Assembly: GCA_051530055.1 (NCBI GenBank)
Contig: CM121342.1
Coordinates: 5,393,489 to 5,457,488 of the forward strand
Direction of reading: 5' to 3'
Length of the DNA stretch: 64,000 bases
From: Neoechinorhynchus agilis
Taxonomy: Eukaryota > Animalia > Acanthocephala
In this document: one piece after another, positions 4,978-61,927 of the stretch
Layout of the letters: each line of letters starts with the position of its first letter
Position numbering within the stretch: position 1 is the first letter of the stretch
Translations under genes and position numbers: made by a program
The notes under the pieces: generated by a model
Database searches by the model: none
Told to the model about the DNA's origin: nothing
The model's input: only the letters and a program-made list of their open reading frames with translations

Positions 4978-7900
4978 ATGTACCGCCTCGAAGGTTCTGA
5001 TCCAAGTGAATTGGGCGGTTTAGTTAGAAGGCCGAGACCTCGAGAATCACGAGAACCATCGAAGCGATTGGAAACTTCGATTGACAGCGTTGCGTTCTAT
5101 CAGCGTAAGATGTCAGCTCAACAGAAACAAATCCACGCGGACATAAAGAAATGGGAAACGAACCGGATGCTAACGAGTGGAGTCCTAAGAGCCGGTATTG
5201 GTCATTCGGATGACCTAAACGAAGAAACCGACGTCCGCGTTCATTTACTTGTACACAACATTGTTCCTCCTTTCCTCGATGGTCGGTACGTGTTCACAAG
5301 ACAATTTGATCCGGTAGTTCCGGTCCGCGATCCCAAATCCGATATGGCTGTTATATGCCGTAAAGGTTGTTTGAGTGTCCGTCGGTTCCGCGAGCAGAAG
5401 GAGAGAATGGCTGCTCAGGATAAGAGTTGGCAGTTGGCTGGGTCTCGGATGGGGAACGTATTGGGTTTAAAAGGTAGGTCCGATGATCGGATGAGTCAAT
5501 CAGTCGATTACCGAACAAGCCATCAATTCAGTGAACATGTAGACGAACGTTCACTGACGACGGTTTCCACTATAAAACGCCGATTTTTGCCGATATTCAA
5601 TGTTCGTGAGAAATTGTTGAGTGTTGTAAGGGACAACAGCGTAGTTGTAATTGTAGGCGAGACCGGAAGTGGAAAGACTACCCAGCTAACACAATACCTC
5701 CACGAGGAAGGATACAGTCAAAATGGACTCATTGGATGCACTCAACCTAGACGGGTTGCGGCAATGAGTGTAGCGAAAAGGGTCTCTGAAGAGATGAACA
5801 CTCGTTTGGGCGAGAAAGTCGGATATGCCATTCGATTTGAAGATTGTACATCATCCAATACAGTCATAAAGTACATGACCGATGGTATTCTTCTTAGAGA
5901 AAGTCTAAATGAGTCTGATTTGGACAAATATTCAGCCGTTATTATGGACGAAGCTCATGAGCGCTCCCTAAATACAGACGTTTTGTTCGGTCTACTAAGA
6001 GAAATTGTTATTCGCCGTCAAGATTTAAAGGTAATCATCACTTCGGCAACGCTTGATAGTGAAAAATTTTGTTGCTTCTTCGGTAATGCGCCGGTATTCC
6101 ACATTCCAGGAAGGACTTATCCTGTCGAAAAACTCTACAGCAAAACCGTTCACGAAGATTATGTTGAAGCTGCCGTTAAGAATATCATTCAAGTTCATCT
6201 TGGGATGCCAAGTGGAGGAGACATTCTTGTGTTTATGCCAGGACAAGAAGATATTGAAGTAGCGTGTGATTTAGTTCAACAAAAGCTGTCTCAATTGGAT
6301 AATCCGAAACCGCTTCTCGTTCTTCCGATCTACTCTCAGCTGCCAAGTGAGCTTCAGGCAAAAATCTTTCAGCGGTCCCCTGATGGCAATAGGAAGTGTG
6401 TAATAGCTACGAACATTGCCGAGACTTCTTTGACTGTCGATGGAATAAAGTTCGTGATTGACACGGGTTATTGTAAATTGAAGGTCTATAACCCTAGGGT
6501 TGGAATGGATGCCCTCCAAGTGTTTCCGATTAGTCAAGCGAATGCTGAACAGCGTGCGGGAAGAGCTGGACGAACTGGACCTGGTCAATGTTTTCGGCTT
6601 TACACTGAGAGAGCTTTTAGAGAAGAAATGCTTAAATGTAATGTTCCCGAGATTCAACGCACAAATTTGGCTCACGTGGTTCTTCTTCTAAAGTCCTTAG
6701 GTATCGACGAACTCCTTTCTTTTCACTTCATGGACCCACCTCCTCAAGATAATATGCTCAATTCCATGTATCAGCTATGGATTCTCGGTGCACTCGATAA
6801 CACTGGAGCGCTAACTAAAGAAGGACGACAGATGGTTGAGTTCCCTCTCGATCCAGCCTTGAGCAAAATGCTCATTCAATCTGTGGAAATGGGTTGCAGT
6901 AGAGAGGTTCTGACGGTAGTATCAATGCTGAGTGTTCCGTCTATTTTCTCGAGACCAAGTGGAAAGGAAGTGGAGTCTGATGCGAAACGAGAGAAATTCC
7001 AAGTGCCTGAGAGTGATCATCTCACTTATCTTAACGTGTAAAGGCCACTGATTCTTGATTTGCTAGGACTTGGAGACCCCATTTTTTTAATCGAAAATAT
7101 TTTATTTCAATCAATCTTCATCTCTCTCGACAATTAACACACTCACAGCCTCCCGCCAAATTCCAGCTTCTCTCCTTTATCGACCGTCGCCATCACGCTG
7201 GCAGCATTGCCCCGTTGTACTGCGAGGGAGATATTTTGTCGAAGGAATACGCCTGCTCTTGAGTCTCCGGTTGCCTCTCTCAATTTCTTCGAGAGATCCT
7301 GGAGCAGAGAGAGTGCCGGTATCTTTTTTTTTACAAATGCTCCTAATAAAAGGATCGAGAATTCCCTGGCAGACATTCAATGGAAAGCGAGTGGTTACTC
7401 TAACAACTGGTGCCAAGATCATTACCTACATGCAAAGTCTCTAAGGAAGGTACGAGAAGTACGGCAGCAACTAAAGGACATAATGGACGCCCAGAAATTG
7501 GAGATCATCAGCGTAGGTACAGGGAACGATTGGGATATAATAAGGAAATGCATTTGTTCGGCATATTTCTACCAGGCTGCACGTCAGAAATCAATTGGGG
7601 AATACGTGAACCTTCGAACCGGAATGCCGTGCCATTTGCATCCAACGAGTGCTTTGTATGGATGTGGATTCATTCCAGATTATGTGGTCTATCATGAACT
7701 GTTCATGACCCATAAAGAGTACATGCAGTGTGTCACTGCAGTTGATGGGCAATGGCTAGCTGAATTAGGCCCCATGTTCTTTAGTCTTAAAGATCCTGAC
7801 CGAAGCCGGGTGGAGTCCAGGAAAAAACAAACCGATCATTCTAAACTTACAATGGAACAGGAAATGCAAAGAGCCGAACGCCAACTAACTAGGCAGCGTA

Positions 7901-8028
7901 CTGAACGTGAACAAAAGGCCGCTGTCGTTCCTGCTTCCCTCAAACGATTTGCTACCATTGCAACGCCAGGTAAAATCACCAAAGATCATACACCTTTTAG
8001 GACCAAAAGGACCCGGCCGGGAGTCTGA
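4978..8028 (+). CDS. DHX38: Pre-mRNA splicing DEAH helicase PRP16, interrupted once at 7040-7372
   Basis: N-terminal MYRLEG..GGL resembles the DHX38 start; [15 protein letters not shown] and QRAGRAGR motifs; HA2 and OB-fold regions continue in ORF 7207-8028. Confidence 0.96.
7040..7372 (+). other. Non-canonical stem-closed intervening sequence in PRP16 (333 nt)
   Basis: Removal yields HLTYLNVYIQWK. Stem: GCCA/TGGC plus ATTCTTGAT(7051-59)/ATCGAGAAT(7354-62) with one G-U. Flanks TA...GA. Confidence 0.8.
7143..7325 (-). mobile_element. 3' fragment of a CRE-like retrotransposon nested in the PRP16 intervening sequence
   Basis: Encodes [38 protein letters not shown], the typical CRE-clade C-terminus. 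Confidence 0.85.
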
Positions 8029-8204
8029 GAATATGTTATTGTAAGCAAAAATGTTTTTCACTCCTAAAACTAACTTGAAGCTATTATGGATTTTTCGTGT
8101 CTTTTTATTCGCTACATTTGAGAAATTAAACAAAAAAATTCGGTTTCAACAAATAGAGTTCGGCTTCTTGGTGCTTCCCCTCCTTTTATTACAAATTATT
8201 TTTA

Positions 8205-10141: not shown

Positions 10142-10291
10142 GATGTTTGCATCTGACGTAAAAATTAAAAGGATTTATTGGTTCCGATATTTCGGCACAA
10201 TCTTGTGAACCTTGATCAAAAGGCGTACAAGATTGTGCCGAAATATCGGAACCAATAAATCCTATTAATTTTTACGTCAGATGCAAACATC
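10142..10291. repeat. 65-bp near-perfect inverted repeat with 20-nt loop (MITE-like palindrome)
   Basis: 10142-10206 is the reverse complement of 10227-10291 with one mismatch. Confidence 0.9.
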
Positions 10292-10724
10292 TCTAAAGTT
10301 ATCGAACTAACAATGATGATTGGACAATCACATTGTTGTCCTTCATCGAATGTGCAAATTGGTTTGTTCAACCAAACAAGCTTCCTCGTTGAATTCACGA
10401 AACCGTTTAGTCTTCACGAGACTGATGATTGTTCCTTAAGCACGAAAATGTCGTGGGGGTTTACAAACGCCATTCCGCTCCGTGAATTCGTCTTCTTGAT
10501 TTAAATTTGGCATTAAATCGCTTTTAGTCATAAACGACAAATCAGCACCTAATCTGAACAGTTCGTTGTTTTTATAGTTTAAAAGCTCAAAACAGACAAA
10601 ACAACTAAATGTTCATTTGCGCTGAATTCAAATCTCCACTAACTCAGTTGTAGAAATTTTAACGCTCTTAATTCTTATCTTAGCTGCAATGTCACGGCGT
10701 TACAGTCTTAAATTGACGAGGAAG

Positions 10725-10828
10725 TGTATTCCTGCGACAAAATATCTCGCTCGCAGTACAACGAGGCAATGCCGCTAGGGACAGCCGAGGAAGGAGAGAA
10801 GTTTCGATTTTGCTGACGGTGGTGATTG
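10725..10828 (+). mobile_element. Degenerate 3' end of the CRE-like element
   Basis: CAAAATATCTCGCTCGCAGTACAACGAGGCAATGCCGC...GACGGTGGTGATTG matches the 3' ends at 7143-7325 and 42840. Confidence 0.75.
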
Positions 10829-11587
10829 TTGGAAAATTGGATTCAATTGGGAGTTGCGTGCTACTTAAAGACCTTAAGGTTGCGTATATTTAAACTCGAA
10901 TTGAAGCGAATTTTGGCTAATATGCAAAAATTTATGAAAGGTTTTTCTTTTGCGTTCAATGAAAAATTCAGGTTTGTGTTGATATAACGACTTTTGAACC
11001 GACACTTTTGACGCAAAAACGAAAAGTCCCATGTAGATCTTTCTAGCTTTTTATTAAAATTATGCTTTTGGTCTTTATAAACAAAGGAGCCATTTAAGCG
11101 ATTACAAACATCTTGTACCAGAAACCAACGAACTCATCGATAATATTGTACGTTGGCGAATCCTGTCCCCGGTGCTATAGATACTCATTTATTTGAGAAA
11201 TATTTCGCAAGGTTTTCCTTGCCTCTTCAGTCTCTGTTGCTTCTAAGTTTTTAAATATGTGGCAGTGGTCAACTTCGAGGACAACGATATATGTCATCGA
11301 TAATAGTTAACAATCGAACAATCAATTTTTCTTTTCCATTTAAACCATTTGCATCGAATGTGAAGGCTTAGAGGATTCCAAAGTTAGCTAAAATGCGGAA
11401 AATTTGTTCAATTAGTAAAGTTTGATCATTCTGGATACAAATCGGACCAACGGTCAAATGTTAATCATAATTTTAATTATTAATATGTACGCAGCAAGCA
11501 TCCTTATCACTAGAAAGTTTGCGATGAGGGTTGCGTTTTTTAATCGGTCAGATCGGTTATCGTTTCCCCCATACATTATAGATCTTT

Positions 11588-13408
11588 ATGAAAATTCGAC
11601 TGGTTCGAATTCTTGCGACTGTTTCAGCAGGAATTTGTTCGGCTTGTTACTATATGTGGAAAATCGAAAGTCCCTCAGGAATCGATGTCTATTATCGGAT
11701 CGAGCCTCTTGAGCAACCATCATTGCCACAATGTTTAGCCTACCAAAAGACTGTTTTGTGCTGCTTACTCAATGACTTTAACTGTATCAAAAACGGCGTT
11801 AATCTGCTCGGAAGCGATATTCATAGGAGGCTCATTTCATATAGACTCACTCCCGCCGTAAGTGCGATTCTCGCCTTGGATTCCGAGGACCATTCCGATG
11901 TCTTGTATGACGGCATTCCACTGACCAAGCCAGCAGCACTTGATGCGATGATGCAGTTATGGTCCATTGCTGGCGAGCATTGGCCAATAATGATTTCCGA
12001 TCACGAAGCCGCCTCTGATTATCGACATGACTGGTCTAAACTAGGAGATCCCAGGGGGTGAGAGGGAACTTTTAGTGAAAATTACTGGCAGAACTGCGAA
12101 TAATTTGCCTCAGAAGGTTCGACCATTTCGTTTCCAACGAGGGACTCCAGCTACTTCGGACGTCGGTTCTAAATAATCCCCAACTCGTTCTTCAAACCAT
12201 TCAATCATGTATCGATCCAATATGTATGTCTGAGCAGACCAGTGATTTACTTGGCATCATTCATCATGCCGGTTGGCTGAAAATACTCGCAAAGGCTCAC
12301 AAATCCAATGATATTAAACAATGACCTGATCTCCGGAAACGGGTTTTTGAGGATCATTTCCGGTGGAATTCCATGTTTTCTTAATCCATTTTCCACACAA
12401 GGGCCGAAAATGTGTCCAATAATTTTAAGCTCGTGTCTTTCCCGAAAAAAAGAAGGTCAAAGCATCAACGGTTTTTGTAGTAACTTTATATGTTAAACCT
12501 CTGTTCTCACTATGAAATGTGTGAAAAAGATCAGTTCTACTAGAACATCCATGTTGTCCCGCCGGTGTATTGTAAACCTTTTGACCGACGCACGATACGG
12601 TCCAAACGTTTATCCAGTCAGCGGACCCAACAATGACCGCGCCCTCGATATCGTTTTCATTCACGGATTCAATGGAAGCGCATTCTTTACATGGCGACAA
12701 CAAGGGTTCCTTCACCACCACGAGACTCCGAACTTCACGTTTTGCTGGCCACGAGATTGGCTCGCCACTGATTTGAAATCCACAAGCGTTCGGATACTTA
12801 TGATCGACTATGATAGTGATTGGTCTTACGACACTATTCACAGCGCAGTTCGTGAACAATTGATCACTGCTGGTATTGGCGAACGCCCCTTGATTCTCGT
12901 GGGACACTCAATGGGTGGAATAATCGCTAAGCGATTGATTTGTGAGGAAACCAAGATCGCCAATGTCACAAAGGCCATTGTGTTCTACAGTGTTCCTCAC
13001 CTTGGAACAGATCATCTAATGCAAAAGTCTAGAGTATCGCCACAGAACTTAAGAAAGCTCTCGTCCAATAATCCCTACCTGTCTAACCTTCATAATCGAT
13101 TCATCAATTGCGTACTCAGTCGATCTATTGAATTTCTCAGCTTTTGTGAACTGTTGCCCATGAATGGGTTCGCAGGAACTATGCTAGGAAATGCACCCGT
13201 GGTCACTGTTACTGATGCAGATATCGGGATTGGACGATTCATAACCTCACAGAAAACACACGTTAATATATGCAAGTTTGAAGACCGAAAGTGCTCGGAT
13301 TACCTGGAGATGGTGGGTCTTGTGAATGATATCATCGAAAATCTCGATGAGAAGGACACAAAGCGCTACGAGTGTTTTTTTCCCGACTTCTTTTGTCCTT
13401 TTCAATGA
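11588..13408 (+). CDS. SERAC1: SERAC1-like protein: exons 11588-12057, 12114-12315 and 12542-13408
   Basis: N-terminal TM; NEGLQLL and AGWLKILAKAHKS segments; alpha/beta-hydrolase DIVFIHGFNG..TWRQ..WPRDWL..GHSMGG. One GT-AG intron (12058-12113) and one non-canonical interruption. Confidence 0.85.
12316..12541 (+). other. Non-canonical stem-closed intervening sequence in SERAC1 (226 nt)
   Basis: TA(12315-16)...TA(12541-42). Stem GACCTGATCT(12323-32)/AGATCAGTTC(12528-37), 9 of 10 pairs. Removal gives KSNDIRTSMLSRRCIVNL and restores the frame. Confidence 0.7.
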
Positions 13409-13736
13409 AGCGTGATTTCTAAAACGTTGAATACGAAAAAAATCAGTGGAAAAGGGCAATTTTTTGTGGTTTTTCACTTCACAACGTTCAAAAATTATGA
13501 ACCCCTAATATAGAACGCTAACTCACTGACACTCAAGACGTTTCCACGAAAAATAGAAACACCTCATACGATTCTCTATTTTAATCTCAGAGACGTGTAC
13601 AAAAGAAATGGCTGTGTTTTTAATGTACAAAATACGGAATCGTACAAAAGTATCACACACACACAGATTTGAGTACTTTTTATTTTTCAAGATCTCTAAG
13701 CGTCGCTGTAGGCGTTTTCATCGTGTAACCTCCCAC

Positions 13737-15245
13737 GGCAAAACTAAAAGTTGAGATGATGGTAACGATTGAAGGTTGCAGCCATCGCCCGAGTCCATGT
13801 TTCCGTTGATTCTGGATCATCGTTGAGGATCCAGAAAAGTGCCGCCTGGAAACGGAAGCGAAAACGAACCCCCTTCAAAATCCCCTGAGCGACCGCTGGA
13901 TATCTCGGATTCGCCAAGTCTTTTCGACCTGATCGCGTGATCTCGGATCCGATTCCTTGGAGATCCACATTGTCCATGGCAAAAACTAAAAGTTGAGATG
14001 ATGGCAACGATTGAAGGTTGCAGCCATCGCCCAAGTTCAAGTCTCCGTTGATTCTGGATCGCCGTCGAGGATCCAGAAAAGTGCCTCCGGGCAACGGTCG
14101 CGAAAACGAACCCCCTTCAAAATCCCCTGAGCGACCGCTGGATATCTCGGATTCGCCAAGTCTTTTCGACCTGATCGCGTGATCCCGGATCCGATTCCTT
14201 GGAGATCCACATTGTCCATGGCAAAAACTAAAAGTTGAGATGATGGCAACGATTGAAGGTTGCAGCCATCGCCCGAGTCCATGTTTCCGTTGATTCTGGA
14301 TCACCGTTGAGGATCCAGAAAAGTGCCGCCTGGAAACGGAAGCGAAAACGAACCCCCTTCAAAATCCCCTGAGCGACCGCTGGATATCTCGGATTCGCCA
14401 AGTCTTTTCGACCTGATCGCGTGATCTCGGATCCGATTCCTTGGAGATCCACATTGTCCATGGCAAAAACTAAAAGTTGAGATGATGGCAACGATTGAAG
14501 GTTGCAGCCATCGCCCAAGTCCATGTTTCCGTTGATTCTGGATCACCGTTGAGGATCCAGAAAAGTGCCTCCGGGCAACGGTCGCGAAAACGAACCCCCT
14601 TCAAAATCCCCTGAGCGACCGCTGGATATCTCGGATTCGCCAAGTCTTTTCGACCTGATCGCGTGATCTCGGATCCGATTCCTTGGAGATCCACATTGTC
14701 CATGGCAAAAACTAAAAGTTGAGATGATGGCAACGATTGAAGGTTGCAGCCATCGCCCAAGTCCAAGTCTCCGTTGATTCTGGATCACCGTTGAGGATCC
14801 AGAAAAGTGCCTCCGGGCAACGGTCGCGAAAACGAACCCCCTTCAAAGTCCCCTGAGCGACCGCTGGATATCTCGGATTCGTCAAGTCTTTTCGACCTGA
14901 TCGCGTGATCTCGGATCCGATTCCTTGGAGATCCACATTGTCCATGGCAAAAACTAAAAGTTGAGATGATGGCAAGAATTGAAGGTTGCAGCCATCGCCC
15001 AAGTCCAAGTCTACGTTGATTCTGGATCACCGTTGAGGATCCAGAAAAGTGCCGCCTGGAAACGGTAGCGAAAACGAACCTTCTTCAAAGTCCCCTGAGC
15101 GACCGTAGGATATCTCGGATTCGTCTAGTTTTTTCAGCTATCTCGGATTCGTGAAGTCTTTTCGACCTGATCGCTTGATCTCGGATCCGATTCCTTGGAG
15201 ATCCACATTGTCCATGGCAAAAACTAAAAGTTGAGATGATGGCGA
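13737..15245. repeat. Tandem array of about 242-bp units, about 6 copies
   Basis: GGCAAAA(A)CTAAAAGTTGAGATGATGG recurs at about 13737, 13978, 14220, 14462, 14704, 14946 and 15216. Confidence 0.95.
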
Positions 15246-15285
15246 CAATTATGCTTCCGTTGATTCCCGATAGGGACGGTGATTC

Positions 15286-25940: not shown

Positions 25941-27098
25941 GTAAAGTGTGCTGTATAAAGTTTTGTTTTCCAAAATGGACACTTGGTCTTCTGTTGTAAT
26001 GATAAAAAATCTTTTCGATAGCTTTCGCCGTCGGCTTAGCGTGTTAAAGTTGTGGAATGTTCGTCAAGACCATTGAAAATCTCTCGTTTGCATTGTGTGC
26101 ACAAACACTTTTAACAACCGTCCAGTTTTGAAAAAATCAAGTATCCACCAGATTCTACGGTACAAACTTAAAAGCATTTGATTGGAATACTTAGGGGAAG
26201 TGTTCAGTTCTTAGTTGCCTTTGCATCGAGGTCGATCGTCTGACTGTGTGGTTTTATATTGGATTTTATTTAAGGCTGTGTACGTTCATGGGATAAAACG
26301 ATAGAGAGAAAAGTGAGAGAACTTGCCTTTGCTGCGATCGGACTTTCTTTTCAGGGAAAGCGATTTGTGGCAGTAGAAGCTAAAAGAGCGCCAATGAGCT
26401 GAACTTCCAATCACTGAGGCTTTAAAAGATTGCCGCTTTTTAAAACTTGTTCAATAACAATGATGAACACATATGAGTCGCAGTTCAATAAAGCCATAGG
26501 CGATCTTCGTTTTCGGCTTCCTTTTTTTATCAGATTTCGATTTGAAAACGTGTAACATTTGATTTGCTTTATAGATTGCTCACCAAATCAAAATTCAATC
26601 AAAAAACAAGCTAAAACCAATCGCGGGTCCATTTCTTTCTCTCAAAAACTCATCCTTTGGAGATGGATTGCGAATTCAATGGGCGGACTAGAATCTTCGA
26701 TAAAAGTGCACTGGATCGTCAATTTTATCCGGATCGCTGGTTGCTATAAAAGAGACCTTGCAGCGAAACAAGTTTTTTGTTACTTAACAAAAATCCCCTT
26801 AGGGAAATCCTCATTAGAAAAAACACTCGAGTTCAGAGTTGTTCAAAGAATGCGGTTGTTGATTTTGGAGTGGATTACGAGTCCGGTGTCTTTTGTGAAA
26901 ATGAAGCTTTCTATTTCTTTTAAGAACACATCACATTGTGGTTGTCCGAGAAAATCGTATCCGATTTAATTTGGATAAATGACGTTCTACTGTAAATCTC
27001 TTTTCGAATCCACTGAATGTGGAGAGTGATCAGTTTTTGTTAAAGGACGTTTCGTCGCCATTGGAATGGATGGACGAAACGGTACCGAATTGAACGTT

Positions 27099-42414: not shown

Positions 42415-42839
42415 GTTTGCAATTTTTAAACGTACCTTTCTTTTACAAAGACGACTGGAGGTTGTTATGGTGACCGCTAAGTCTAACTTGATCTTAAATT
42501 TGCTGCAATATACCGCTTTAACATTGTCCTTAATGGATTGAAGCAGACAGATAAAAAAATTGAAGCAGCCTTAGTTTAGACACAAATCCACGCCGCGATA
42601 AGAAATAGAATTTAAAATATCTAGCCGAAAAAAGATCATGATAAAAAAATTATTCCTGGACCCCCTTCGAAAAACAATTTAAAAATAAAAAAAATTATTC
42701 TTCGCCCAACCCTTTCAAAAAACTAAAAGAAATGAAAAAACGAAAAAATAATCCATTAAAAAAATTATTACTGAACCCCTATTGCAAAATTTTTTTAAGG
42801 CGATAAAGGAATTTTAATAATAAAGTACAAAACGTGCAA

Positions 42840-43545
42840 TCACCACCGTCCGCAAAATCGAAGCTTCTCTCTTTCATCGGCTGTCGTTATCGCGCTAGCA
42901 GCATTGCTGTCACCGGTCGTTTCTCTCAATTTCTTCGAGAGATCCGGGAGCAGAGTGCCGAGCTGCCAAGCGCTCAATACGTCTCTACCCCAAAGGGGAC
43001 AAAATAGTGGGCCCTTGCTAAATCCCTATATTTTCGTACCTTCCTCCCTTCCGTTGCAATGGTTGCACCTCCAGCGGCTTCGAGAGAATAGAGAATGTTG
43101 CTTACTGCGAGGATGTCCAAACACGTGGCGTCCCAGAGAAGACATTTGCCCTCCCGCCACTTAAAGACCGAAATTCCGTCAGGTCGACAAAGATGGGCGG
43201 GTTCCAAGATGTTCAGGAAGTTCACCGTTTTCAATGCCCGAGAAATTGCGCTATCGATCTCAGAATGGCGTGAGAACCTTAGTCCTGACTTTCGGCCAAC
43301 GAGACCGTGTCGCCCGAAAGCATCAACCAAAGACCCACAGACCAAGTCTTAAGGACACTGCGATCCTCGTTACCTCATCAGTAAGAAGATTTCCCACAGA
43401 TGCCAGAGGAACAGCCTCCAACCACGTACCCGATTCTCGCGTTGAAACTGCCAACAATCTAGCTCGGACGACCCCATCGTGAGAACCTGAAAGTAGAGAG
43501 CTCTCGCGACGAGAGATCTGTCCCAGATCGACTGTCTGAGGCCAT
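42840..43545 (-). mobile_element. About 700-bp CRE-clade retrotransposon derivative (3' RLE region)
   Basis: Encodes ARLLAVSTRESGTWLEAVPLASVG and HGLVGRKSG..RHSEID..LEPAHLCRPDG..WREGKCLLWDATC..KVRKY..FVPFGVET, ending in the GNAAS-type tail. Confidence 0.9.
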
Positions 43546-43603
43546 TCACGGGAACATGATTAGCGCCTGTCTGCTGGCAACATTCTTTAACTGCCCCTAC
43601 AAA

Positions 43604-43898
43604 GTCTTGGTCAAACCGACGACACCGATTCCGTCCCCGAGCAATTCAAGGAGCTAATGGATGGGTTCGAGGCCGTTGCTCCAGGTCTGAAACTCGTGAC
43701 TCCAGAGCAACTCGACCTTCTGGGCAGTTGCGTCTTTGATTCAAATGTTAAAGCTGAGATCGGCCGTATCATACCGAAACTTTCGTTGCTGTGCGATAGG
43801 GTGAAAGCTCTCTCGGCGTTATTTCTGATAAAAAACGCACCCTTTATCCCCAAATTGTCTTCAAACATAAGGAAGGATTTGCTAAGCTCGACGGCAAG
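43604..43898 (+). CDS. Possible internal exon(s) of an unidentified gene
   Basis: Open frame QTDDTDSVPEQFKELMDGFE.. after an AG at 43602-03, with a GTGAGG donor at 43899. No family recognised. Confidence 0.3.
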
Positions 43899-43937
43899 GT
43901 GAGGGCTTGTCCCGAGCGTATTTTAAATGTCCAGCTT

Positions 43938-45812
43938 GATTGCACCGTTTTGTCAGGTTGCACCAGATCTTCTGATTGCACCGCTTTGTCAGGTTGCACC
44001 AGATCTTCTGATTGCACCGCTTTGTCGGGTTGCACCAGATCTTCTGATTGTACCGTGTTGTCGGGTTGCACCAGATCTTCTGATTGTACCGTGTTGTCGG
44101 ATTGCACCAGATCTTCTGATTGTACCGTGTTGTCGGGTTGCACCAGATCTTCTGATTGCACCGTGTTGTCGGGTTGCACCAGATCTTCAGATTGCACCGT
44201 TTTGTCGGGTTGCACCAGATCTTCTGATTGTACCGTGTTTTCGGGTTGCAACAGATCTTCTGATTGTACCGTTTTGTCAGGTTGCACCAGATCTTCTGAT
44301 TGTACCGTGTTGTCGGGTTGCACCAGATCTTCTGATTGTACCGTGTTGTCGGGTTGCACCAGATCTTCTGATTGCACCGTGTTGTCAGGTTGCACCAGAT
44401 CTTCTGATTGCACCGTGTTGTCAGGTTGCACCAGATCTTCTGATTGTACCGTTTTGTCGGGTTGCAACAGATCTTCTGATTGTACCGTTTTGTCGGGTTG
44501 CACCAGATCTTCTGATTGTACCGTTTTGTCAGGTTGCAACAGATCTTCTGATTGCACCGTTTTGTCGGGTTGCACCAGATCTTCTGATTGTACCGTGTTG
44601 TCGGGTTGCAACAGATCTTCTGATTGTACCGTTTTGTCAGGTTGCACCAGATCTTCTGATTGTACCGTGTTGTCGGGTTGCACCAGATCTTCTGATTGCA
44701 CCGTGTTGTCGGGTTGCACCAGATCTTCTGATTGTACCGTTTTGTCAGGTTGCACCAGATCTTCTGATTGCACCGTGTTGTCAGGTTGCACCAGATCTTC
44801 TGATTGTACCGTTTTGTCGGGTTGCAACAGATCTTCTGATTGCACCGTTTTGTCAGGTTGCACCAGATCTTCTGATTGCACCGTTTTGTCAGGTTGCAAC
44901 AGATCTTCTGATTGTACCGTGTTGTCGGGTTGCACCAGATCTTCTGATTGCACCGTTTTGTCGGGTTGCACCAGATCTTCTGATTGTACCGTGTTGTCGG
45001 GTTGCAACAGATCTTCTGATTGCACCGTTTTGTGGGTTGCACAGATCTTCTACCGTGTTGTCGGGTTGCACAGATCTTCTGATTGCACCGTTTTGTCGGG
45101 TTGCACCAGATCTTCTGATTGTACCGTTTTGTCGGGTTGCAGATCTTCTGTGCCGTTTTGTCAGGTTGCACAGATCTTCTGATTGTACCGTTTTGTCAGG
45201 TTGCACCAGATCTTCTGATTGTACCGTTTTGTCGGGTTGCAACAGATCTTCTGATTGCACCGTTTTGTCAGGTTGCACCAGATCTTCTGATTGTACCGTG
45301 TTGTCGGGTTGCACCAGATCTTCTGATTGTACCGTGTTGTCGGGTTGCACCAGATCTTCTGATTGTACCGTGTTGTCGGGTTGCACCAGATCTTCTGATT
45401 GTACCGTGTTGTCGGGTTGCACCAGATCTTCTGATTGTACCGTGTTGTCGGGTTGCACCAGATCTTCTGATTGCACCGTGTTGTCGGGTTGCACCAGATC
45501 TTCTGATTGTACCGTTTTGTCGGGTTGCACCAGATCTTCTGATTGCACCGTTTTGTCAGGTTGCACCAGATCTTCTGATTGTACCGTTTTGTCAGGTTGC
45601 ACCAGATCTTCTGATTGCACCGTTTTGTCGGGTTGCAACAGATCTTCTGATTGTACCGTGTTGTCGGGTTGCACCAGATCTTCTGATTGCACCGTTTTGT
45701 CAGGTTGCAACAGATCTTCTGATTGCACCGTTTTGTCGGGTTGCACCAGATCTTCTGATTGCACCGTGTTGTCGGGTTGCACCAGATCTTCTGATTGTAC
45801 CGTTTTGTCGGG
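43938..45812. repeat. 36-bp minisatellite, about 52 copies
   Basis: Unit GATTG(C/T)ACCGT(T/G)TTGTC(A/G)GGTTGCA(C/A)CAGATCTTCT, contiguous with no spacers. Confidence 0.97.
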
Positions 45813-47306
45813 TAATTGATTTCAGCTGTCAGACAATGCGCACCAACCTCAGTTCCTGATCGAGACGCTCCTTTTCGAAGGGACGTCGCGAGGTGGAAGA
45901 CGCGTTGGCCGAGGACAATACGCGGCCGAGGCAAAATACAGCGAACAGCAAAGCGCGGAAGAATCACGATGATAAGTCTGATGTCGGATTCCCATAATGG
46001 TGAGTCCACTAATGATTTTTCGACACAATGAAGGTACGATATTGATCGTCACATTTTTGGCCTTTATGGAATGGAATTTTGGGTTTAATTCTTTGTGTAA
46101 GCTGTAGTTTTACGGAGTAAATATTTATGATGGCGTGAACTGCGGCTTGGTTTCCCGGTTGCATGTTAAATCAATCTTTTTTTCATATATTTTCGTTCCG
46201 GTCGATAGTATTGAGCTGTGTGCTCGAATTAAACGTAAGTTCCGTTTTTCCGGTTAACGGATTGTTGAATATATTTCGATCTCGAAAGGGAAAGTTCACA
46301 TTTCCGCTCACAACACTCGTGGCGTTCTCCAGGCCGCTATTCATTATTGACCAATGTCTACGCCTATTCTATAGTAAATGTTCTCAGAGAATTTTTTTGT
46401 CTTATTGTTACTTCCACAAAAACACTTCTATCAAGATAGTCTCTTCCCTTGTAGCAACATCCATAATGCCCCATTCGTAATCTGCAGCCTACAAGAATGT
46501 TACCGCAATGTAAAGCAAGTTATTCGGGTCTTCCTCCTCCAGTCGTATATTTTGCCGTCAATCAATGCCGAGCGACAATTTCGATAATAAGCTAAGAACT
46601 CTTCTACAAGGTACAGTACACAAATATACATTTGTTCGGATTTTATCAGCAATTTTAAATCAGTCAAAAAACGTAAAATGCAAGAACGAAACTTAAGAAC
46701 GAGCTTCTTCAAAATAACAAATGCTATCGTTCCTTCTTACAAACTCATGAACAAATGAATAATATTTGATCCGTTTAGCCTCTCAAAAATTCTATTTAAT
46801 GTTTTCAGCCGTGAATTGCTTCTTCTTCTTTGTGTTTGCCAACTTTTGTCACCGTTTTTAAAGCTCACAAACACTTTGTATCCGCCGCCCAGCAGCGAGC
46901 GCCGAGCCTCTCAGGATAACGAGGGACCTTCGTCGAGCAAACTCAACTTGATGCAAAACATGCCCCAAAGTATACTTCAAACTCTCAGCGAGTCCGATTG
47001 AAGCGTCCGAACAAAACCATGGTTCTCAGACATCCGTGAACTTGTCAAAGTCGACTTAATTTCCGGCGATAGAAAGCTGTGAGCTTAATTGCATAGACTC
47101 GGATGGAAGCGCATGTTCACTATCTTGAGACAAAATGTTATTCCTCCAAGTAGGAGTCGATTGTTGATCTTGAATGCTCATATTCTGCCCAGTAGACCAT
47201 GAGCTTGGGGCGCCGTATCAATGGCGAATAGCGTTAGTCCCTAGAAGTGAAATCTCATTTCTGTCATGTTATAAAAAAGTAATGCATTAAGAAGAAACGT
47301 TGTTGT

Positions 47307-49088
47307 TTAGAGTTCACGCAAATCTACATTCCAGTTCTCAGGTCGTCGTTGTTGTTGGACGTAAGCGATTTGACCTTGGGTGATCGTCATAAGAACCGAT
47401 AAGTCATTTCCATTATCGTCTAGTAGAACCATATCAGCGCCCTCTCCATCCACATACCGTCCTTTTTTCGTCAATCCCAAAGCATTGGCAGCGTGGCTAC
47501 TAGCGCATTCTATGGCGTACGGGAGATGATCTCGCCCAATGGCATTCGCGAAGATAGAAACACATTCAACGAGTGAGGCAATACTTCCACAAAGTGTATC
47601 CGAATCTAAAAGCGTTGCTTGACGCCTACTACTCGACGGATTACGTTTCAGTTCGATGTCCAGTTCGCCTAATTTGTACTGTCCATCTCCTAGTCCAAAC
47701 GCAGAAATAGCATCCGTGACAAGAACAAGTCCTTTTGGATTGGATCGATGGGCGATACGAAGTGCAGATGGATCCGTATGGACGCCATCGGATATTATAC
47801 CGTAGAATATCGGTTGTGGAATTCGCGAACTAGTCAATAGACCGACTAGATGCGGGTCTCTATGGTGATACTAAAATGGTTTCAGTAGAGAGAGTAAGTT
47901 TAACCGTTTTTTCTCTGTTTCTATAGAACGCTTTAGATTGTGATCGACTCTTTAGTAACAGTTGCTCATTTTAGAAACAAAATTAAACTTACAGGAAGCA
48001 TCGCATTGAACAAATGAGTAATCATCTTGGCTCCACTAGACACTCCCGCTTCACCCTGTCGAAGATCCGCTGCCGAGTGACCTAAAACTTACAAATTAGC
48101 ATCTCGTTTTTAGTTTAAGATTCTCTTACCCATTGAGACACAAATGTTGTGATTATCCACAATTCCTTCTAAGGCTGCAATTAGTTCTAAGAAACAAGCA
48201 ATGAAATTCTAAATGAAAACCGGAGTCTTAATGAAGACTCTAAAAGGATCTCTTAACGGTTCAGTAGCATTTTAGGGTATTTTACGCAAATTCGCTTAGC
48301 AAGAGAACTAAAGCCTTCGAGCCAAACAAAATAATTGCCACCATATTGCACTTAAAGCATTTTCCAATTCAGGTGCCAAAGTGATTATTCGAGTATTGTC
48401 CAAATTCCCATAGACTTCTAAGACGTCCTCATACCCCCCAAATTCAAACTTCCTTATGTTTTTTGCTTCGTGTGCTCCTTTTCTTTGCGGATTTATGAAT
48501 GGACCTTCTAAATGACAACCGAGCACCGCTGCTCCTTCGGTATCCGAATCTCTAACCACAATATTTGGCAATACCTATTTTAAGGACGGTTTGTTCATGA
48601 AGAACTTCCTGTCAATACCTTCCTATAAGTCTCTTTGCTTGACGTCACCAAAGTTGGACAATAAGAGGTAACGCCGGTTGTCAGCAGGAACTTTCCAAGG
48701 ACTTTTGTGTGTTCTGCTCCTTGGGATTGATCGCAGAAATCCACACCAAGGCCACCTATCCAGAATTTACAGGTATTAAGCTAAAAACAGTCGCCCCATT
48801 TTACCGTTGATTTGAACGTCGATTAGTCCGGGCGCAAGAATACGGTTTTTACAGTCAATCTCCATGTCCCATCTTCGTTTCTCATCATAGAAAACTTTCT
48901 GCATATCGATGAACTTTCCGTTTCGTACCTGTTCAATTTTTTTTCAGATAAAAAGATAACGATATAATAGTTACCCATATGTTCCGTTGAACGAAATTTC
49001 CATCTTTGACAATCCTACAATTCGTAAACTTTATAATCTTGTTCTTTGAACCGAGATGTCGGTTGTAAAGCGAACAGTCAATTGGCAT
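47307..49088 (-). CDS. AMDHD2: N-acetylglucosamine-6-phosphate deacetylase, multi-exon
   Basis: [62 protein letters not shown]. Confidence 0.93.
48171..48344 (-). other. Stem-closed TA-bounded intervening sequence in AMDHD2 (174 nt); a GT-AG alternative also exists
   Basis: On the minus strand: TA-T-GGTGGCAATTA...TAATTGCAGCC-T-TA (one G-U, one mismatch). Removal gives [25 protein letters not shown]. Confidence 0.55.
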
Positions 49089-49871: not shown

Positions 49872-52565
49872 CTCTGGCTCCTTTCCGTGAGCACTCGAGT
49901 TCTGATTTGTCAAACGAATGCGGTTCTTTATTTTAAAAAGAGGATTACGGATTTGGTCGAGTGGGAATATCCGGTTGGTTAATTGTTAGTTGTTGTTATC
50001 TTCCGTTCGTAGTCGAACAAACAATAGGGTTTTTCAACCAAGGTTGCCCAAAATTGTTTTTTTTTCGTTACGAACGCGAGTTGGGTTTTTTTTGAAAACC
50101 CTCAAATGTTAAAATCAATGGAGAATACAAAGTAATTGTAAATAATATCACATTTTATTCAAAGTAGGGAAACTATGTCCTTCTCTGGCTCCTTTCCGTG
50201 AGCACTCGAGTTCTGATTTGTCAAACGAATGCGGTTCTTTATTTTAAAAAGAGGATTACGGATTTGGTCGAGTGGGAATATCCGGTTGGTTAATTGTTAG
50301 TTCTTGTTATCTTCCGTTCGTAGTCGAACAAACAATAGGGTTTTTCAACCAAGGTTGCCCAAATTTTTTTTCGTTACGAACGCGAGTTGGGTTTTTTTGA
50401 AAACCCTCAAATGTTAAAATCAATGGAGAATACAAAGTAATTGTAAATAATATCACATTTTATTCAAAGTAGGGAAACTATGTCCTTCTCTGGCTCCTTT
50501 CCGTGAGCACTCGAGTTCTGATTTGTCAAACGAATGCGGTTCTTTATTTTAAAAAAGTTACGGTTTGGTCGAGTGGGAATATCCGGCTGGTTAATTGTTA
50601 GTTGTTGTTATCTTCCGTTCGTAGTCGAACAAACAATAGGGTTTTTCAACCAAGGTTGCCCAAATTTTTTTTCGTTACGAACGCGAGTTGGGTTTTTTTT
50701 GAAAACCCTCAAATGTTAAAATCAATGGAGAATACAAAGTAATTGTAAATAATATCACATTTTATTCAAAGTAGGGAAACTATGTCCTTCTCTGGCTCCT
50801 TTCCGTGAGCACTCGAGTTCTGATTTGTCAAACGAATGCGGTTCTTTATTTTAAAAAGAGGATTACGGATTTGGTCGAGTGGGAATATCCGGTTGGTTAA
50901 TTGTTAGTTGTTGTTATCTTCCGTTCGTAGTCGAACAAACAATAGGGTTTTTCAACCAAGGTTGCCCAAAATTGTTTTTTTTTCGTTACGAACGCGAGTT
51001 GGGTTTTTTTTGAAAACAATCAATGGAGAATACAAAGTAATTGTAAATAATATCACATTTTATTCAAAGTAGGGAAACTATGTCCTTCTCTGGCTCCTTT
51101 CCGTGAGCACTCGAGTTCTGATTTGTCAAACGAATGCGGTTCTTTATTTTAAAAAGAGGATTACGGATTTGGTCGAGTGGGAATATCCGGTTGGTTAATT
51201 GTTAGTTCTTGTTATCTTCCGTTCGTAGTCGAACAAACAATAGGGTTTTTCAACCAAGGTTGCCCAAATTTTTTTTTCGTTACGAACGCGAGTTGGGTTT
51301 TTTTTGAAAACCCTCAAATGTTAAAATCAATGGAGAATACAAAGTAATTGTAAATAATATCACATTTTATTCAAAGTAGGGAAACTATGTCCTTCTCTGG
51401 CTCCTTTCCGTGAGCACTCGAGTTCTGATTTGTCAAACGAATGCGGTTCTTTATTTTAAAAAGAGGATTACGGATTTGGTCGAGTGGGAATATCCGGTTG
51501 GTTAATTGTTAGTTGTTGTTATCTTCCGTTCGTAGTCGAACAAACAATAGGGTTTTTCAACCAAGGTTGCCCAAAATTGTTTTTTTTTCGTTACGAACGC
51601 GAGTTGGGTTTTTTTTGAAAACCCTCAAATGTTAAAATCAATGGAGAATACAAAGTAATTGTAAATAATATCACATTTTATTCAAAGTAGGGAAACTATG
51701 TCCTTCTCTGGCTCCTTTCCGTGAGCACTCGAGTTCTGATTTGTCAAACGAATGCGGTTCTTTATTTTAAAAAGAGGATTACGGATTTGGTCGAGTGGGA
51801 ATATCCGGTTGGTTAATTGTTAGTTCTTGTTATCTTCCGTTCGTAGTCGAACAAACAATAGGGTTTTTCAACCAAGGTTGCCCAAAATTGTTTTTTTTTT
51901 CGTTACGAACGCGAGTTGGGTTTTTTTTGAAAACCCTCAAATGTTAAAATCAATGGAGAATACAAAGTAATTGTAAATAATATCATTTATTCAAAGTGAA
52001 ACTATGTCCTTCTCTGGCTCCTTTCCGTGAGCACTCGAGTTCTGATTTGTCAAACGAATGCGGTTCTTTATTTTAAAAAGAGGATTACGGATTTGGTCGA
52101 GTGGGAATATCCGGTTGGTTAATTGTTAGTTGTTGTTATCTTCCGTTCGTAGTCGAACAAACAATAGGGTTTTTCAACCAAGGTTGCCCAAAATTGTTTT
52201 TTTTTCGTTACGAACGCGAGTTGGGTTTTTTTGAAAACCCTCAAATGTTAAAATCAATGGAGAATACAAAGTAATTGTAAATAATATCACATTTTATTCA
52301 AAGTAGGGAAACTATGTCCTTCTCTGGCTCCTTTCCGTGAGCACTCGAGTTCTGATTTGTCAAACGAATGCGGTTCTTTATTTTAAAAAGAGGATTACGG
52401 ATTTGGTCGAGTGGGAATATCCGGTTGGTTAATTGTTAGTTCTTGTTATCTTCCGTTCGTAGTCGAACAAACAATAGGGTTTTTCAACCAAGGTTGCCCA
52501 AATTTTTTTTCGTTACGAACGCGAGTTGGGTTTTTTTGAAAACCCTCAAATGTTAAAATCAATCG
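49872..52565. repeat. Tandem array of about 305-311-bp units, about 9 copies
   Basis: CTCTGGCTCCTTTCCGTGAGCACTCGAG recurs at 49872, 50183, 50488 and onward. Confidence 0.95.
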
Positions 52566-52825
52566 AGAATAGGCAAAGTATTTCACAAACAAAAATGAGA
52601 ATCATATTATTAACAGGGAAGACCGAACAATTTCGTTATTTTCTTGTCTAAAACAATTTTTTGTAAGAAACATTGTGATGAATCCAAAAAGTCTAATGAA
52701 ATTGATGGATTGCCTATTTAAGGCGCTCTCCAAATCTCGTCCGATTCATCATCAGTTTGTTGGTTATTAAAAGACGAAACTAACAAAATAACGATGAACT
52801 CGATGAGCTTTATATAAAAAATGTT

Positions 52826-53082
52826 GTGTAGTGACGAGAATAATTATGTAAATTAATTGAATCGATATTTCGGCTCAATCCAGAGCCTTTATCAAGATCT
52901 GAAAGGTTGGATTTTGGTTTTATCAAAATCCATAAGGTTTCCATGATGGACAAAATGATTGGACAATCAAAAAGGTGGAAGGCAACAAGTCGACCGCGTT
53001 TTACAGATGAGAGTCTCAATCTTTCAGATCTTGATAAAGGCTTTGGATCAATCAATTTACACAATTATTATCGTCACTACAC
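52826..53082. mobile_element. MITE-like element with long terminal inverted repeats
   Basis: 52826-52905 is the reverse complement of 53021-53082 apart from an 18-bp indel and a few substitutions; spacer about 115 bp. Confidence 0.75.
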
Positions 53083-53446
53083 AGCAATCATGAGCAGTTT
53101 CATTTTTCAACTATATAAACGGATTGTTTAAAAACGCCGCCAATTTCTATTCAAATTAAGCGTCTTTCAAGCATGAACTAAAGACATAACATCCGGAATT
53201 ATTGTTTAGATCGACACCTAAAGACGTTTCGAAACTCGTCGGAAAATTGTTTATTCTGCACCTGATTCAATAGATGGTTTTCTTTCGTGTATAAAGCGCC
53301 AATATTACAAGTGTTACTTTCGGCGCTCAAAAGTGCGAGTGTTCAAAGTGGGTAGTTTGGCCAGCGCACTGTTTCGTCATCGCACTTTTTCTTGAGAACG
53401 AGAGTCGATTGGTGTGTTATTTTCTTGTGACTATCCAAATCCAAAG

Positions 53447-57323
<3,877 letters not shown>

Positions 57324-59682: not shown

Positions 59683-61927
59683 ATGGTCGATAGTGGCGAA
59701 AGCAGCAGAATAAATGTTTTAAGTGATCCTTGTGGGAACAGATCGGATTTATCCCATACGGATACAATGAGTCCGGACTTAGTTGTAAAGTCAATGTTGG
59801 AAAAATGCTACGAGTACTCAAACAACAAACTGTTACAAATTGGCCAATACAAACAACGCCGTCGGTCGTATAAAGCATTCTTCACTGCCGGACGATTGCG
59901 ATGGTACCAGAAAGTGGGTTTGCATTGGTATAGGAAACTATTTGATAATCAAATGAATGGAATATTAGCAGACGAAGCGAGTCTCGGTAAAACCATTCAA
60001 ACGATCGCATTCGTATGTGATGTTCTGGCACGGGAACGTAATGGTCCATTCTTAATTGTGTGTCAAAAAACTCTTTTCAATCATTGGATAGTTAATTTCA
60101 AAAGATTTGCACCCCACGTTAAGTGTATAGTAGCCTATGGATCAACAAAGGAAGCACGGGCTGCGTCGAAATCAAAATTTAGCCGAAGTTTGTCCAGCCA
60201 GCCAATGGCTACTACCATCCAAGTACTATTAACTGCCTATGAAATCATCCGTCAGGATAAGAAATTCTTTCAAAATATAGCATGGAAAATTGTGTTTGTT
60301 GATGCACGAAACCGACCCAAAACTTCTTATTCCAAACCATTGGAGACGCTGAATTGTCTAGATACGGAGAGTCGATTCATTGTATCGGAATCTCCTCCAA
60401 GCGAAAAACTCAATGAGTTGTTTATTGTACTTGAGTTCTTAATGCCAGTTGTATTTAAAGAAATCGCAATTCCTGACTTTCACAACGCTGTAAAAAGTAT
60501 CATTGAACCCACAAAGCATTTCGAGAATCAACGTAGCGAAAATAGTCAACATTTGTCTAAAATGGACAAACGTGCAATTTCCGAAATGGTCATCCACATC
60601 CATGAAATCATTTCTTATTTTACCCTTCGGCGGTTCAAAAGTGACGTTGAATCCATTCGGACTCTCCCACTTAAAATCGTTAAGACAATAGAGATTAGAA
60701 TGCACGAAGATCAAATTAGGCTTCTTGAGCATTTCTTGGAGCCAGAAATGGTTAAGAGAAACGGATTACAGCGAATTTGGTCGATTGTGCAACGGTTGGC
60801 TCTAAACCCGCAATTAATCGATGAAGACGATGTTCCGATACCTCATAAACTCTCCCTCGATGCTTGTGAAACATTCTCTGGCTCAAAATTCCGTGCACTC
60901 GGTGTTCTACTGACGAGATTTGTAAAGGAAAATCGAAGAATAGCTATTTTCGTTCAATGTATGGACACGATGGACCTTCTACAGAAGTATTGCGTACGGA
61001 TCCTAAACATTCAGGTTTCCAGAATCGATGCAAAAATGAGCATTTCAAAGCGAAATAGACAGCTTCTTAAATTTAATGATCGGGAAGTAGCTATAATGTT
61101 GCTGAATTCACTGGCAGCAAAATCGGATTTGAATCTAAACAGACCGTGGTCATTAGTGAATGGTTCAAGGAAAGTGATTTTTGACGATTCCATTGTTTTG
61201 CCGTTCTATCACTATTTTTTCTCTCGGAAAGTACTGCTTTTGGACAATGAAAACTACATCTTCACACGATTCATTGACCGTCTCAGTTTAGTTCTTTCCA
61301 GTGATACATTTGGTGGTTTGACATCAAAAGAGAAAATCCTTCGGTAGGTGATCATAATCTAGCCACCCGGATAATGTATTTTATCTGGAGAAGGGGATTA
61401 TGATGTGCACAAATCGAATTGGTTGGTCTAGGAAGAGTCGTTTTTGAACGTCCAGACAAAATCGATCATCTTTCTACACCAACATTGATCGATTTTCGTT
61501 TTTGTAAGGTCTTTTTTTGCGAATAAGAACATGTTTCGTTTGTACGTGAACAAAATTCATGACCGCAGTCTGGATAACGGCAGCAGATACAGTGATTGTC
61601 TTCGATGGCGATCGTAATCCTTTAATAGATGATCGACCAGAAGAAAAATGCAATCGAATTGGAAATCGGGGCGCTCTTCTAATTCTACGTCTTAAGGTCA
61701 CGCCGTCGCCTTATGAGGTACTTTTAAGAAAGCTCACGAGTAGTAATATATCGACGGAAGAGAAAATATTGGAGACATTGAGAGAATCTTACGAGGACCG
61801 TTGTAGTGAAAGAGCGAAAATGCATGCTCAAACAGGTTTTGGTCAACTCAAAGAAAGCGAAGTAGTCAAGTTCGATCCAGACTGCAAAGACTTTTTAAGA
61901 AGGGTTTTGTGTCAAATGACTAAATAA
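59683..61927 (+). CDS. Highly diverged SNF2-family (HELLS/ISWI-like) protein, interrupted at 61137-61575
   Basis: LRWYQKVGLHW..NGILADE..LGKTIQT, GPFLIVC, LLTAYE, FTLRRFKSDV, LNL+TAADTVIVFDGDRNP. Confidence 0.85.
61137..61575 (+). other. Non-canonical stem-closed intervening sequence in the SNF2 gene (439 nt)
   Basis: TAA...TAA. 14-bp stem CAGACCGTGGTCAT(61140-53)/ATGACCGCAGTCTG(61559-72) with one G-U and one mismatch. Removal rebuilds LNLTAADTVIVFD. Confidence 0.82.

Follow-up and report, generated by a model that had tools for sequence, protein, structure and literature searches.

How can conserved proteins be made from genes whose reading frames are broken by segments that carry no usable canonical splice sites? 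The question is raised by a 64-kb stretch of chromosome CM121342.1 (assembly GCA_051530055.1) of Neoechinorhynchus agilis (Acanthocephala, Syndermata), hereafter the window, to whose positions all coordinates refer. Eight segments of 71-439 nt each, all in plus-strand genes, interrupt PRP16/DHX38, SERAC1, an orphan gene encoding a signal peptide and an immunoglobulin (Ig)-like region, RNMT (mRNA cap N7-methyltransferase), an ATP8A-type P4-ATPase, PRP22/DHX8 (twice) and a HELLS/DDM1-like SNF2 helicase. The eight are probably old, TA-inserting inverted-repeat elements, similar to miniature inverted-repeat transposable elements (MITEs), that are removed from pre-mRNA by a hairpin-guided reaction independent of GT-AG sites.

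Transposon-derived introns that lack GT-AG ends are documented in very few lineages, namely euglenids, Amoebophrya and larvacean tunicates, and the machinery for removing them is known only in the tunicates. The proposed TA-bounded hairpin introns would be a variant on these known transposon-derived introns, and we found no report of them for Syndermata, nor, in full-text searches, any report of noncanonical introns in Acanthocephala. Two papers that present or use the N. agilis genome do not mention introns, and they read missing conserved genes as loss (PMC12690905, PMC12256650). An earlier note on this DNA had described nine TA-bounded, stem-closed segments in core genes and had proposed that all are precisely removed. 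Located by their first bases and sizes, all nine are present where that note placed them, with the sizes and first four bases that it gave. Precise removal from otherwise intact core genes remains the interpretation for eight of them; the ninth, in AMDHD2, is a normal intron, and with it the support from a minus-strand gene was lost.

The boundaries of the eight segments follow a common rule (Table 1; a slash marks a boundary throughout). In every case the upstream exon closes with T and the downstream exon opens with A, a pattern that the earlier note had extended to all nine. A TA...TA duplication, previously counted in seven, flanks six of the eight, and the chance of at least this number is about 7e-12 from base frequencies. 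The exceptions are PRP16 (ending ...CAG/A) and ATP8A (ending ...TGA/A), both of which keep the 5' TA. Excision from T/A to N/A (N being any base) gives an open frame in 8/8, and the restored exon site reads TA in all eight and T/AC in five. The interrupted genes contain no other frameshift or stop, and the insertion phases are mixed among 0, 1 and 2. Joins are gapless with respect to homologues at six junctions (PRP16, both in PRP22, RNMT, ATP8A and SNF2), and because the junctions are set by homology there is no freedom in the choice of boundary. In the sole frame-restoring registers the terminal dinucleotides are AA..AG, AA..CT, AA..AT, AT..GT, AA..GA, AT..TT, AA..CT and AA..AT. The A-W-N-S start that had been proposed does describe the first four bases, as a motif resting on eight sites picked after the fact.

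Protein alignments fix most of the junctions to the residue. The PRP16 join, YLNVY/IQWKASGY, aligns without an indel to YLNIYQQWKASGY of the acanthocephalan Pomphorhynchus laevis, with a predicted exon junction sequence of ...CTTATCTTAACGTGT/ACATTCAATGGAAAG; in the protein database its junction-spanning peptide retrieves the N. agilis model ACOME3_005872 at 99% identity, followed by P. laevis at 74%, and the locus maps to around 5.39-5.41 Mb of CM121342.1. The RNMT join FKLDCL/LECPEYLVYFP is gapless against human RNMT across FKLDCLLECPEYLVYFP. For ATP8A, the join LYADFV/YAVFQRT is gapless against human ATP8A1 (DFVYAVFQRT versus DVVYKVIKRT), and the predicted exon junction sequence is ...CGCAGATTTCGTTT/ACGCAGTGTTCCAAA. 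Both PRP22 joins (AYGQRT/ on the upstream side of the first segment, PRP22a, and MEQLHAL/SALDDEG at the second, PRP22b) are gapless against human DHX8, and subtraction of the two segments leaves one uninterrupted frame of 1,188 codons. The SNF2 segment interrupts helicase motif V; alignment of its join, SDLNL/TAADTVIVFDGDRNP, with HELLS and with DDM1 needs no gap. At SERAC1 the join KSNDI/TRTSMLSRRCIVNL agrees with seven homologues to within one residue, with one extra residue near the join, and in the Ig-like gene the join connects a signal-peptide open reading frame to the Ig-like open reading frame. No informative Pfam domain spans the SERAC1 or the Ig-like junction.

One further detail concerns PRP22b. 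Besides TAA, a 7-nt direct repeat, CGCATTG, flanks this segment at 56367-56373 and 56528-56534 and allows a second register of equal length, with N for S. Either the target duplication is longer here, or the repeat arises by coincidence from repeated Ala-Leu codons.

The surrounding genes otherwise follow the canonical rule. Twenty-one GT-AG introns were verified: ATP8A contributes 18, SERAC1 one, and AMDHD2 two besides the reassigned one. Sixteen of them are 34-60 nt long, and the introns of CDIPT, read by eye, are canonical too. The noncanonical class is thus a minority, 8 of about 30 introns checked. PRP16 (4909-8025) and PRP22 (53396-57323) contain no canonical introns in N. agilis. In P. 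laevis, PRP16 has at least six introns over 16 kb, the six nearby all GT-AG, from which it follows that N. agilis lost many introns relative to P. laevis; the site of the N. agilis segment is uninterrupted there, so that the segment is a lineage-specific gain. The products of PRP16 and PRP22, both interrupted here, are themselves spliceosomal helicases.

Because these genes are otherwise intact, conserved, in part single-copy and essential, and offer no usable canonical sites, we infer that the segments are precisely removed. Intact paralogues elsewhere, which the earlier note had named as a refutation, did not turn up for PRP16 and PRP22: the protein database shows no uninterrupted N. agilis copy of either. 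Nearby GT-AG sites, named there as well, account among the nine only for AMDHD2; near the eight, removal at any GT/GC-AG or AT-AC pair would alter conserved residues. To judge from the sequence, precise removal is the only reading that would keep PRP16, PRP22, RNMT, ATP8A and HELLS functional.

Existing gene models fail at the three annotated segments examined. The NCBI annotation of PRP16 is split at the segment into models of 687 aa and 222 aa, the second of which begins inside the segment and in the wrong frame. The SERAC1 model P0242 skips a 67-aa exon (12114-12315) to reach a GT-AG pair, and the skipped exon holds an invariant Trp and a GW..L..KS stretch that are conserved in all homologues. 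The Ig-like model P0241 begins inside the segment, so that the gene is truncated. The annotation, although guided by RNA sequencing (RNA-seq), is therefore broken or mis-spliced at all three.

The second shared property is a helix that closes each segment. We scored the terminal duplex as the pairing of the first 30 nt with the last 30 nt, using random segments of the window as controls. The duplexes of the eight range from -13.3 to -28.6 kcal/mol versus -8.6 +/- 3.6 kcal/mol for random segments (Fisher combined p=3e-11), and they are fully separated from the six GT-AG introns of these genes that exceed 100 nt (-1.5 to -8.3 kcal/mol; Mann-Whitney p=0.0003). Among random TA...TA pairs, too, such values are rare: only about 2% reach -13 kcal/mol and 0.2% reach -18 kcal/mol. 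An end-to-end closing helix is present in both the minimum-free-energy and the centroid folds of 8/8 segments versus 24% of controls. These helices have 9-18 pairs, with unpaired overhangs of 2-7 nt (5') and 1-3 nt (3'); the claim of a 10-17 bp stem in every segment stands approximately for the eight, with SERAC1 weak, and fails for AMDHD2, which has none. The terminal inverted repeats themselves are 10-28 nt long, imperfect (with mismatches and indels), and near but not flush with the TA boundaries.

Individual stems differ in strength. That of the Ig-like gene is the strongest, and no control reaches a value as low as its -28.6 kcal/mol. In PRP16 the helix comprises 16 pairs and leaves overhangs of 4 and 2 nt (-17.9 kcal/mol), in PRP22a it comprises 17 and leaves 3 nt on either side (-16.1 kcal/mol), and in PRP22b it comprises 11. 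RNMT has a perfect 14-bp stem, AGAATACTTTTGTG paired with CACAAAAGTATTCT (fold z-score -4.4). In ATP8A a stem of 14-16 bp with G.U pairs starts 2 nt inside each end (z-score -4.0, with 0/200 shuffles as good), and in SNF2 the stem of CAGACCGTGGTCAT with ATGACCGCAGTCTG contains one G.U and one C.A (z-score -4.3). The SERAC1 helix is found in both kinds of fold, with a duplex of only -13.3 kcal/mol (p=0.11). Whole-segment fold z-scores are significant in only 4/8; the structural signal sits in the terminal helix, not in global stability. That the stems are unrelated between sites, as previously proposed, agrees with the sequence comparison between segments.

Mismatches within the stems bear on whether the helix acts in RNA or in DNA. 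Counted with symmetric DNA scoring, in which both types of transition mismatch are treated alike, the stems contain 9 G.U versus 2 A.C mismatches on the sense strand (binomial p=0.03), whereas inverted repeats that arise by chance in genic regions of that strand contain 106 G.U versus 103 A.C. The sense duplex is stabler than the antisense duplex in 7/8. The earlier argument that sense-strand G-U pairs favour RNA thus retains its direction, on only 11 mismatches and with its minus-strand example gone, and the excess of G.U over A.C is suggestive only.

Table 1. Segments and related features in the window. Exon or flanking bases are in lower case, and slashes mark the boundaries.
Feature	Position	Strand	Length (nt)	Ends	Phase	Remarks
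PRP16/DHX38 segment	7040..7372	+	333	gtgt/AAAGGCC...CCTGGCAG/acat	1	
SERAC1 segment	12316..12538	+	223	tatt/AAACAATG...CAGTTCT/acta	0	TA...TA flanked; weakest of the eight
Signal-peptide and Ig-like gene segment	24065..24325	+	261	cttt/AACGCAGG...GATCTAT/acat	1	TA...TA flanked
RNMT segment	34487..34764	+	278	gttt/ATCGAGAATAC...GTATTCTGT/actc	2	TA...TA flanked
ATP8A segment	40658..40728	+	71	gttt/AAGCCAGCG...CGTTGGTGA/acgc	1	3' junction A/A (no second TA)
PRP22/DHX8 first segment (PRP22a)	54935..55134	+	200	aact/ATGCGATG...CGTTGATT/aatt	0	TA...TA flanked
PRP22/DHX8 second segment (PRP22b)	56364..56524	+	161	catt/AAACGCATTG...GCGTACT/aagc	2	TAA...TAA flanked
HELLS/DDM1-like SNF2 segment	61137..61575	+	439	atct/AAACAGACC...GTCTGGAT/aacg	2	TAA...TAA flanked
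AMDHD2 candidate of the earlier note	48189-48344	-	156			Not a member
TA-flanked perfect foldback	4578..4668	.		ttt/AGTCAATCCC...GGGATTGACT/aaa		Non-coding, upstream of PRP16; -45 kcal/mol, zero overhang
TA-flanked perfect foldback	10177..10256	.		ttt/ATTGGTTCCG...CGGAACCAAT/aaa		Intergenic; -40 kcal/mol, no overhang

A pathway that joins these properties can be proposed. MITE-like transposons of the Tc1/mariner style would have inserted at TA sites in coding exons of N. agilis. In the transcript, the former terminal repeats would pair into the 9-18 bp helix, which would juxtapose the boundaries lying just outside it. Cutting and rejoining at T/A on the 5' side and N/A on the 3' side would then drop the element together with one copy of TA, and the codon present before insertion would be regained. 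Such a reaction would require neither GT-AG nor AT-AC signals, and in these genes it would operate beside the ordinary spliceosomal removal of short GT-AG introns. It could be catalysed by a tolerant spliceosome that the hairpin assists, the Fritillaria model, or by a machinery of its own, such as is suspected in euglenids. We regard it as possible, though doubtful, that this animal has a second, spliceosome-independent route, whether a hairpin-guided endonuclease and ligase acting on pre-mRNA or a precise excision from somatic DNA like that of the internal eliminated sequences (IESs) of Paramecium.

Several features fit this pathway. The mixed phases and the lineage-specific position fit insertion, and the combination of TA duplication and inverted repeats, named previously as the signature of Tc1/mariner (Stowaway-like) MITEs, is indeed carried by the segments, with the duplication in 6/8. 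The two non-coding foldbacks of Table 1, which lie within longer inverted repeats (4565-4681, with 37-bp arms, and 10142-10291, with arms of 27+37 bp), show that TA-flanked inverted-repeat elements also exist outside genes; Rfam gives only sub-threshold microRNA-hairpin matches for them. The two sites that lack a second TA and are nevertheless restored in frame are better fitted by a rule of distance from the helix than by a TA-dependent transposase. Removal at the RNA level is therefore the likelier course; the preference voiced for it in the earlier note keeps the G.U excess and the two TA-less 3' ends as its grounds, that is, 11 mismatches and two segments.

Other observations weigh against this account. 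Multi-copy family membership defines MITEs, and apart from the core of the PRP16 segment there are no sequence matches between segments and no second copy of any segment in the 64-kb window; a multi-copy family with shared ends is likewise absent from it. The segments share no end motif beyond T/A, so that the cue by which a machinery would recognize them is not evident. TA and a stem are not in themselves discriminating: when all 84,063 TA...TA pairs 60-500 nt apart in the window were scored de novo by terminal duplex, 2.2% reached -13 kcal/mol and 0.19% reached -18 kcal/mol, the latter versus 0.16% in a Markov shuffle, with no window-wide enrichment and no further convincing members. SERAC1 is a weak member, with a feeble stem and a junction fixed only to one residue. 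For the Ig-like gene, the protein-database search found no homologue outside N. agilis, and its junction rests on the open frame, TA and the stem. The sense-strand argument comprises 11 mismatches (p ~0.03) with all eight segments on one strand, and a transcription-linked mutation bias could mimic it. The stems could also be leftover terminal repeats without a role in removal. Finally, junction-spanning peptides used to seek a transcript-derived N. agilis protein matched only genome-derived NCBI models, and a query combining junction peptides was swamped by PRP22 homologues.

Compared with known systems, the proposed introns appear closest in architecture to the nonconventional introns of euglenids and closest in origin and host kingdom to the MITE introns of Fritillaria. 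Euglenid nonconventional introns, studied in Euglena gracilis and E. agilis, are characterized by excision as circular RNA, with a machinery suspected to be separate from the spliceosome (PMC12501133, PMC11282704). Like these, the N. agilis segments coexist with GT-AG introns in the same genes, have non-GT-AG ends, vary in length and are unrelated in sequence; their boundaries are pyrimidine/purine with repeats resembling target-site duplications, the downstream exon opens with a purine (A in 8/8 here), and a helix a few nucleotides inside both ends juxtaposes the boundaries, here in predicted folds. In contrast, the CAG (+4..+6) and CTG (-8..-6) triplets required in euglenids (5'-N3CDG ... 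CHGN5-6/R) occur here in SNF2 only (AAACAG...CTGGAT), the triplets that pair first vary from site to site, a 3' spacer of 1-3 nt takes the place of the 5-6 nt in euglenids, and the host is an animal, not a protist.

The MITE-derived introns of Fritillaria borealis (Henriet et al. 2019, summarized in PMC11282704 and PMC13326754) mostly have AG-AC or AG-AT ends preceded by an exonic TAC; about 95% of introns in such genomes are noncanonical, and their spliceosomal removal was shown. The likenesses are an animal host, terminal inverted repeats with target duplications, lineage-specific positions (GT-AG introns occupying conserved positions in the larvacean), and boundaries set by the duplication, so that removal restores the original exon. 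The N. agilis segments differ in that their ends are A...T inside T/A, none starts with AG, nothing beyond TA is duplicated, and they make up a minority of introns. The introners known from Micromonas, Polarella and Amoebophrya are multi-copy and mostly supply or co-opt GT/GC-AG sites (PMC11282704, PMC7789003). Like the proposed N. agilis introns, they are inserted transposons that act as introns, and their boundaries carry duplications and inverted repeats, whereas each N. agilis element is unique within the window and uses no canonical site. Stowaway and other Tc1/mariner MITEs share with the segments the TA duplication, near-terminal inverted repeats, a size of 70-450 nt, the absence of coding capacity and the presence of TA-flanked foldbacks in non-coding DNA; unlike the members of such families, the eight have no sequence in common, and a gap of 1-6 nt separates their repeats from the TA. 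Other element and intron classes were rejected. The TTAA duplications of piggyBac-type elements and 3-nt TWA duplications are not found, exon-exon pairing of the kind expected for a bulge-helix-bulge intron is no better than chance at all eight sites, and when the whole window was compared with Rfam at E<=1, no family, self-splicing intron or ribozyme matched within any segment.

Among alternatives to removal from pre-mRNA, programmed DNA excision is the most durable, and we consider it unlikely. By this explanation IES-type segments are cut from somatic DNA at TA by a domesticated transposase with end-joining, and the assembly shows the unexcised form. In Paramecium, IESs are removed from the DNA of the somatic nucleus and carry the end consensus TAYAGYNR. 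The N. agilis segments share several hallmarks with them: they are short, TA-bounded at both ends in 6/8 with one TA kept after removal, located in coding sequence in any phase, unrelated to one another and equipped with terminal inverted repeats, and IESs derive from elements of the Tc1/mariner type. The assembled DNA, moreover, came from pooled whole worms (PMC12690905). However, PRP16 and ATP8A lack the second TA and yet need exact removal, the ends depart from the Paramecium consensus (at its third base six segments have A and two have T, and the full TAYAG occurs in no segment), and the sense-strand G.U excess is unexpected for a DNA substrate. We know of no report of precise IES-type excision in an animal, nor of chromatin diminution in Acanthocephala. 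An assembly of mostly somatic tissue should also show the excised form.

That the insertions are not removed at all, being null or polymorphic alleles picked by the assembler from the pool or parts of decaying pseudogenes, is less probable still. Exonic MITE insertions do occur, the sequenced sample was a pool (PMC12690905), and heavy loss of conserved genes has been reported for N. agilis (PMC12256650). Against this, a single haplotype would have to carry eight independent insertions in 64 kb, some of them in essential, single-copy splicing helicases, and the genes show no other defects. The stems have diverged, so that the insertions are not brand new, yet the exons are intact, and an intact PRP16 or PRP22 paralogue was not found.

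Ordinary splicing at cryptic GT-AG, GC-AG or AT-AC sites, giving proteins with small indels relative to homologues, is very improbable for the eight. Frame-preserving GT/GC-AG pairs do occur by chance near most segments, but each such pair would delete or replace conserved residues or insert 2-74 residues into conserved motifs, and near the ATP8A segment there is no such pair at all. U12-type splicing was also rejected: no /ATATCCTT 5' site is present, and the segments that start with AT (ATCGAG and ATGCGA, besides ATGGTG in the excluded AMDHD2 candidate) lack ATATCC, with none ending in AC.

Ordinary splicing does explain two neighbouring cases. The AMDHD2 candidate was rejected as a member because a canonical minus-strand intron of 165 nt at 48187..48351, GTGCAA...TTGTTTCTTAG (also given as GTGCAA...TTTCTTAG), fits the homologues: the canonical join aligns to human AMDHD2 and to Bacillus subtilis NagA, whereas a T/A join would need a 3-residue gap. 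Its terminal duplex of -8.5 kcal/mol (p=0.46) amounts to no terminal stem. Consequently no minus-strand example exists, and the support that sense-strand G-U pairs had been thought to draw from a minus-strand gene falls with it. A split ESF1 model (256 aa + 143 aa) in the 2.7 kb examined upstream of the window was considered as a tenth case and rejected, since a 37-nt canonical intron, GTAAAT...TTAAG (L002 1704-1740, about 950 nt upstream of window position 1), joins the two parts in frame. Introns as short as this one appear to be missed by the annotation pipeline.

Hairpin-containing elements that ribosomes bypass occur in yeast mitochondria and phage T4, and the bypass gaps that we know of are about 50 nt or less and not cytosolic in animals, so that read-through of this kind is scarcely credible for the segments. 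An assembly or polishing artefact, for which the hybrid Oxford Nanopore/HiFi/Illumina assembly (PMC12690905) could be invoked, is equally hard to credit, as it would not yield inserts of 71-439 nt with target duplications and inverted repeats exactly at the breaks in protein alignments.

If hairpin-guided removal of transposon-derived segments is correct, N. agilis would be a second, unrelated animal lineage with such introns, in which both intron systems could be compared within single genes (in ATP8A, 18 canonical introns accompany one of the new kind). It would show how exonic transposon insertions turn harmless and would provide a test of a terminal hairpin as a sufficient definer of splice sites. 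A hairpin endonuclease/ligase route, or IES-like excision, would be a first for Metazoa. Part of the reported acanthocephalan loss of conserved genes would then be an annotation artefact; some of the genes reported as lost may contain unrecognized introns of this kind or missed canonical introns of 34-38 nt.

Three further observations concern repeats in the window. A dispersed repeat with retroelement-like open reading frame fragments lies at 1-460, 840-1150, 10695-10890 and 42800-43650, and a piece of it matches nt 100-270 of the PRP16 segment, which may accordingly contain a nested insertion or be itself repeat-derived. In AMDHD2, the canonical minus-strand intron at 47871-47992 starts with GTAAGTTTAA, and TTAAACTTAC, complementary to that start, lies some 30 nt upstream of the intron's 3' end; an old inverted repeat may enclose the 5' splice site. 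Five tandem arrays, at 13733-15135, 27098-28645, 29775-32573, 43937-45813 and 49872-52580 (units of 242, 179, 214, 36 and 311 nt, in 5.8-52 copies of 92-97% identity), together make up ~16% of the window.

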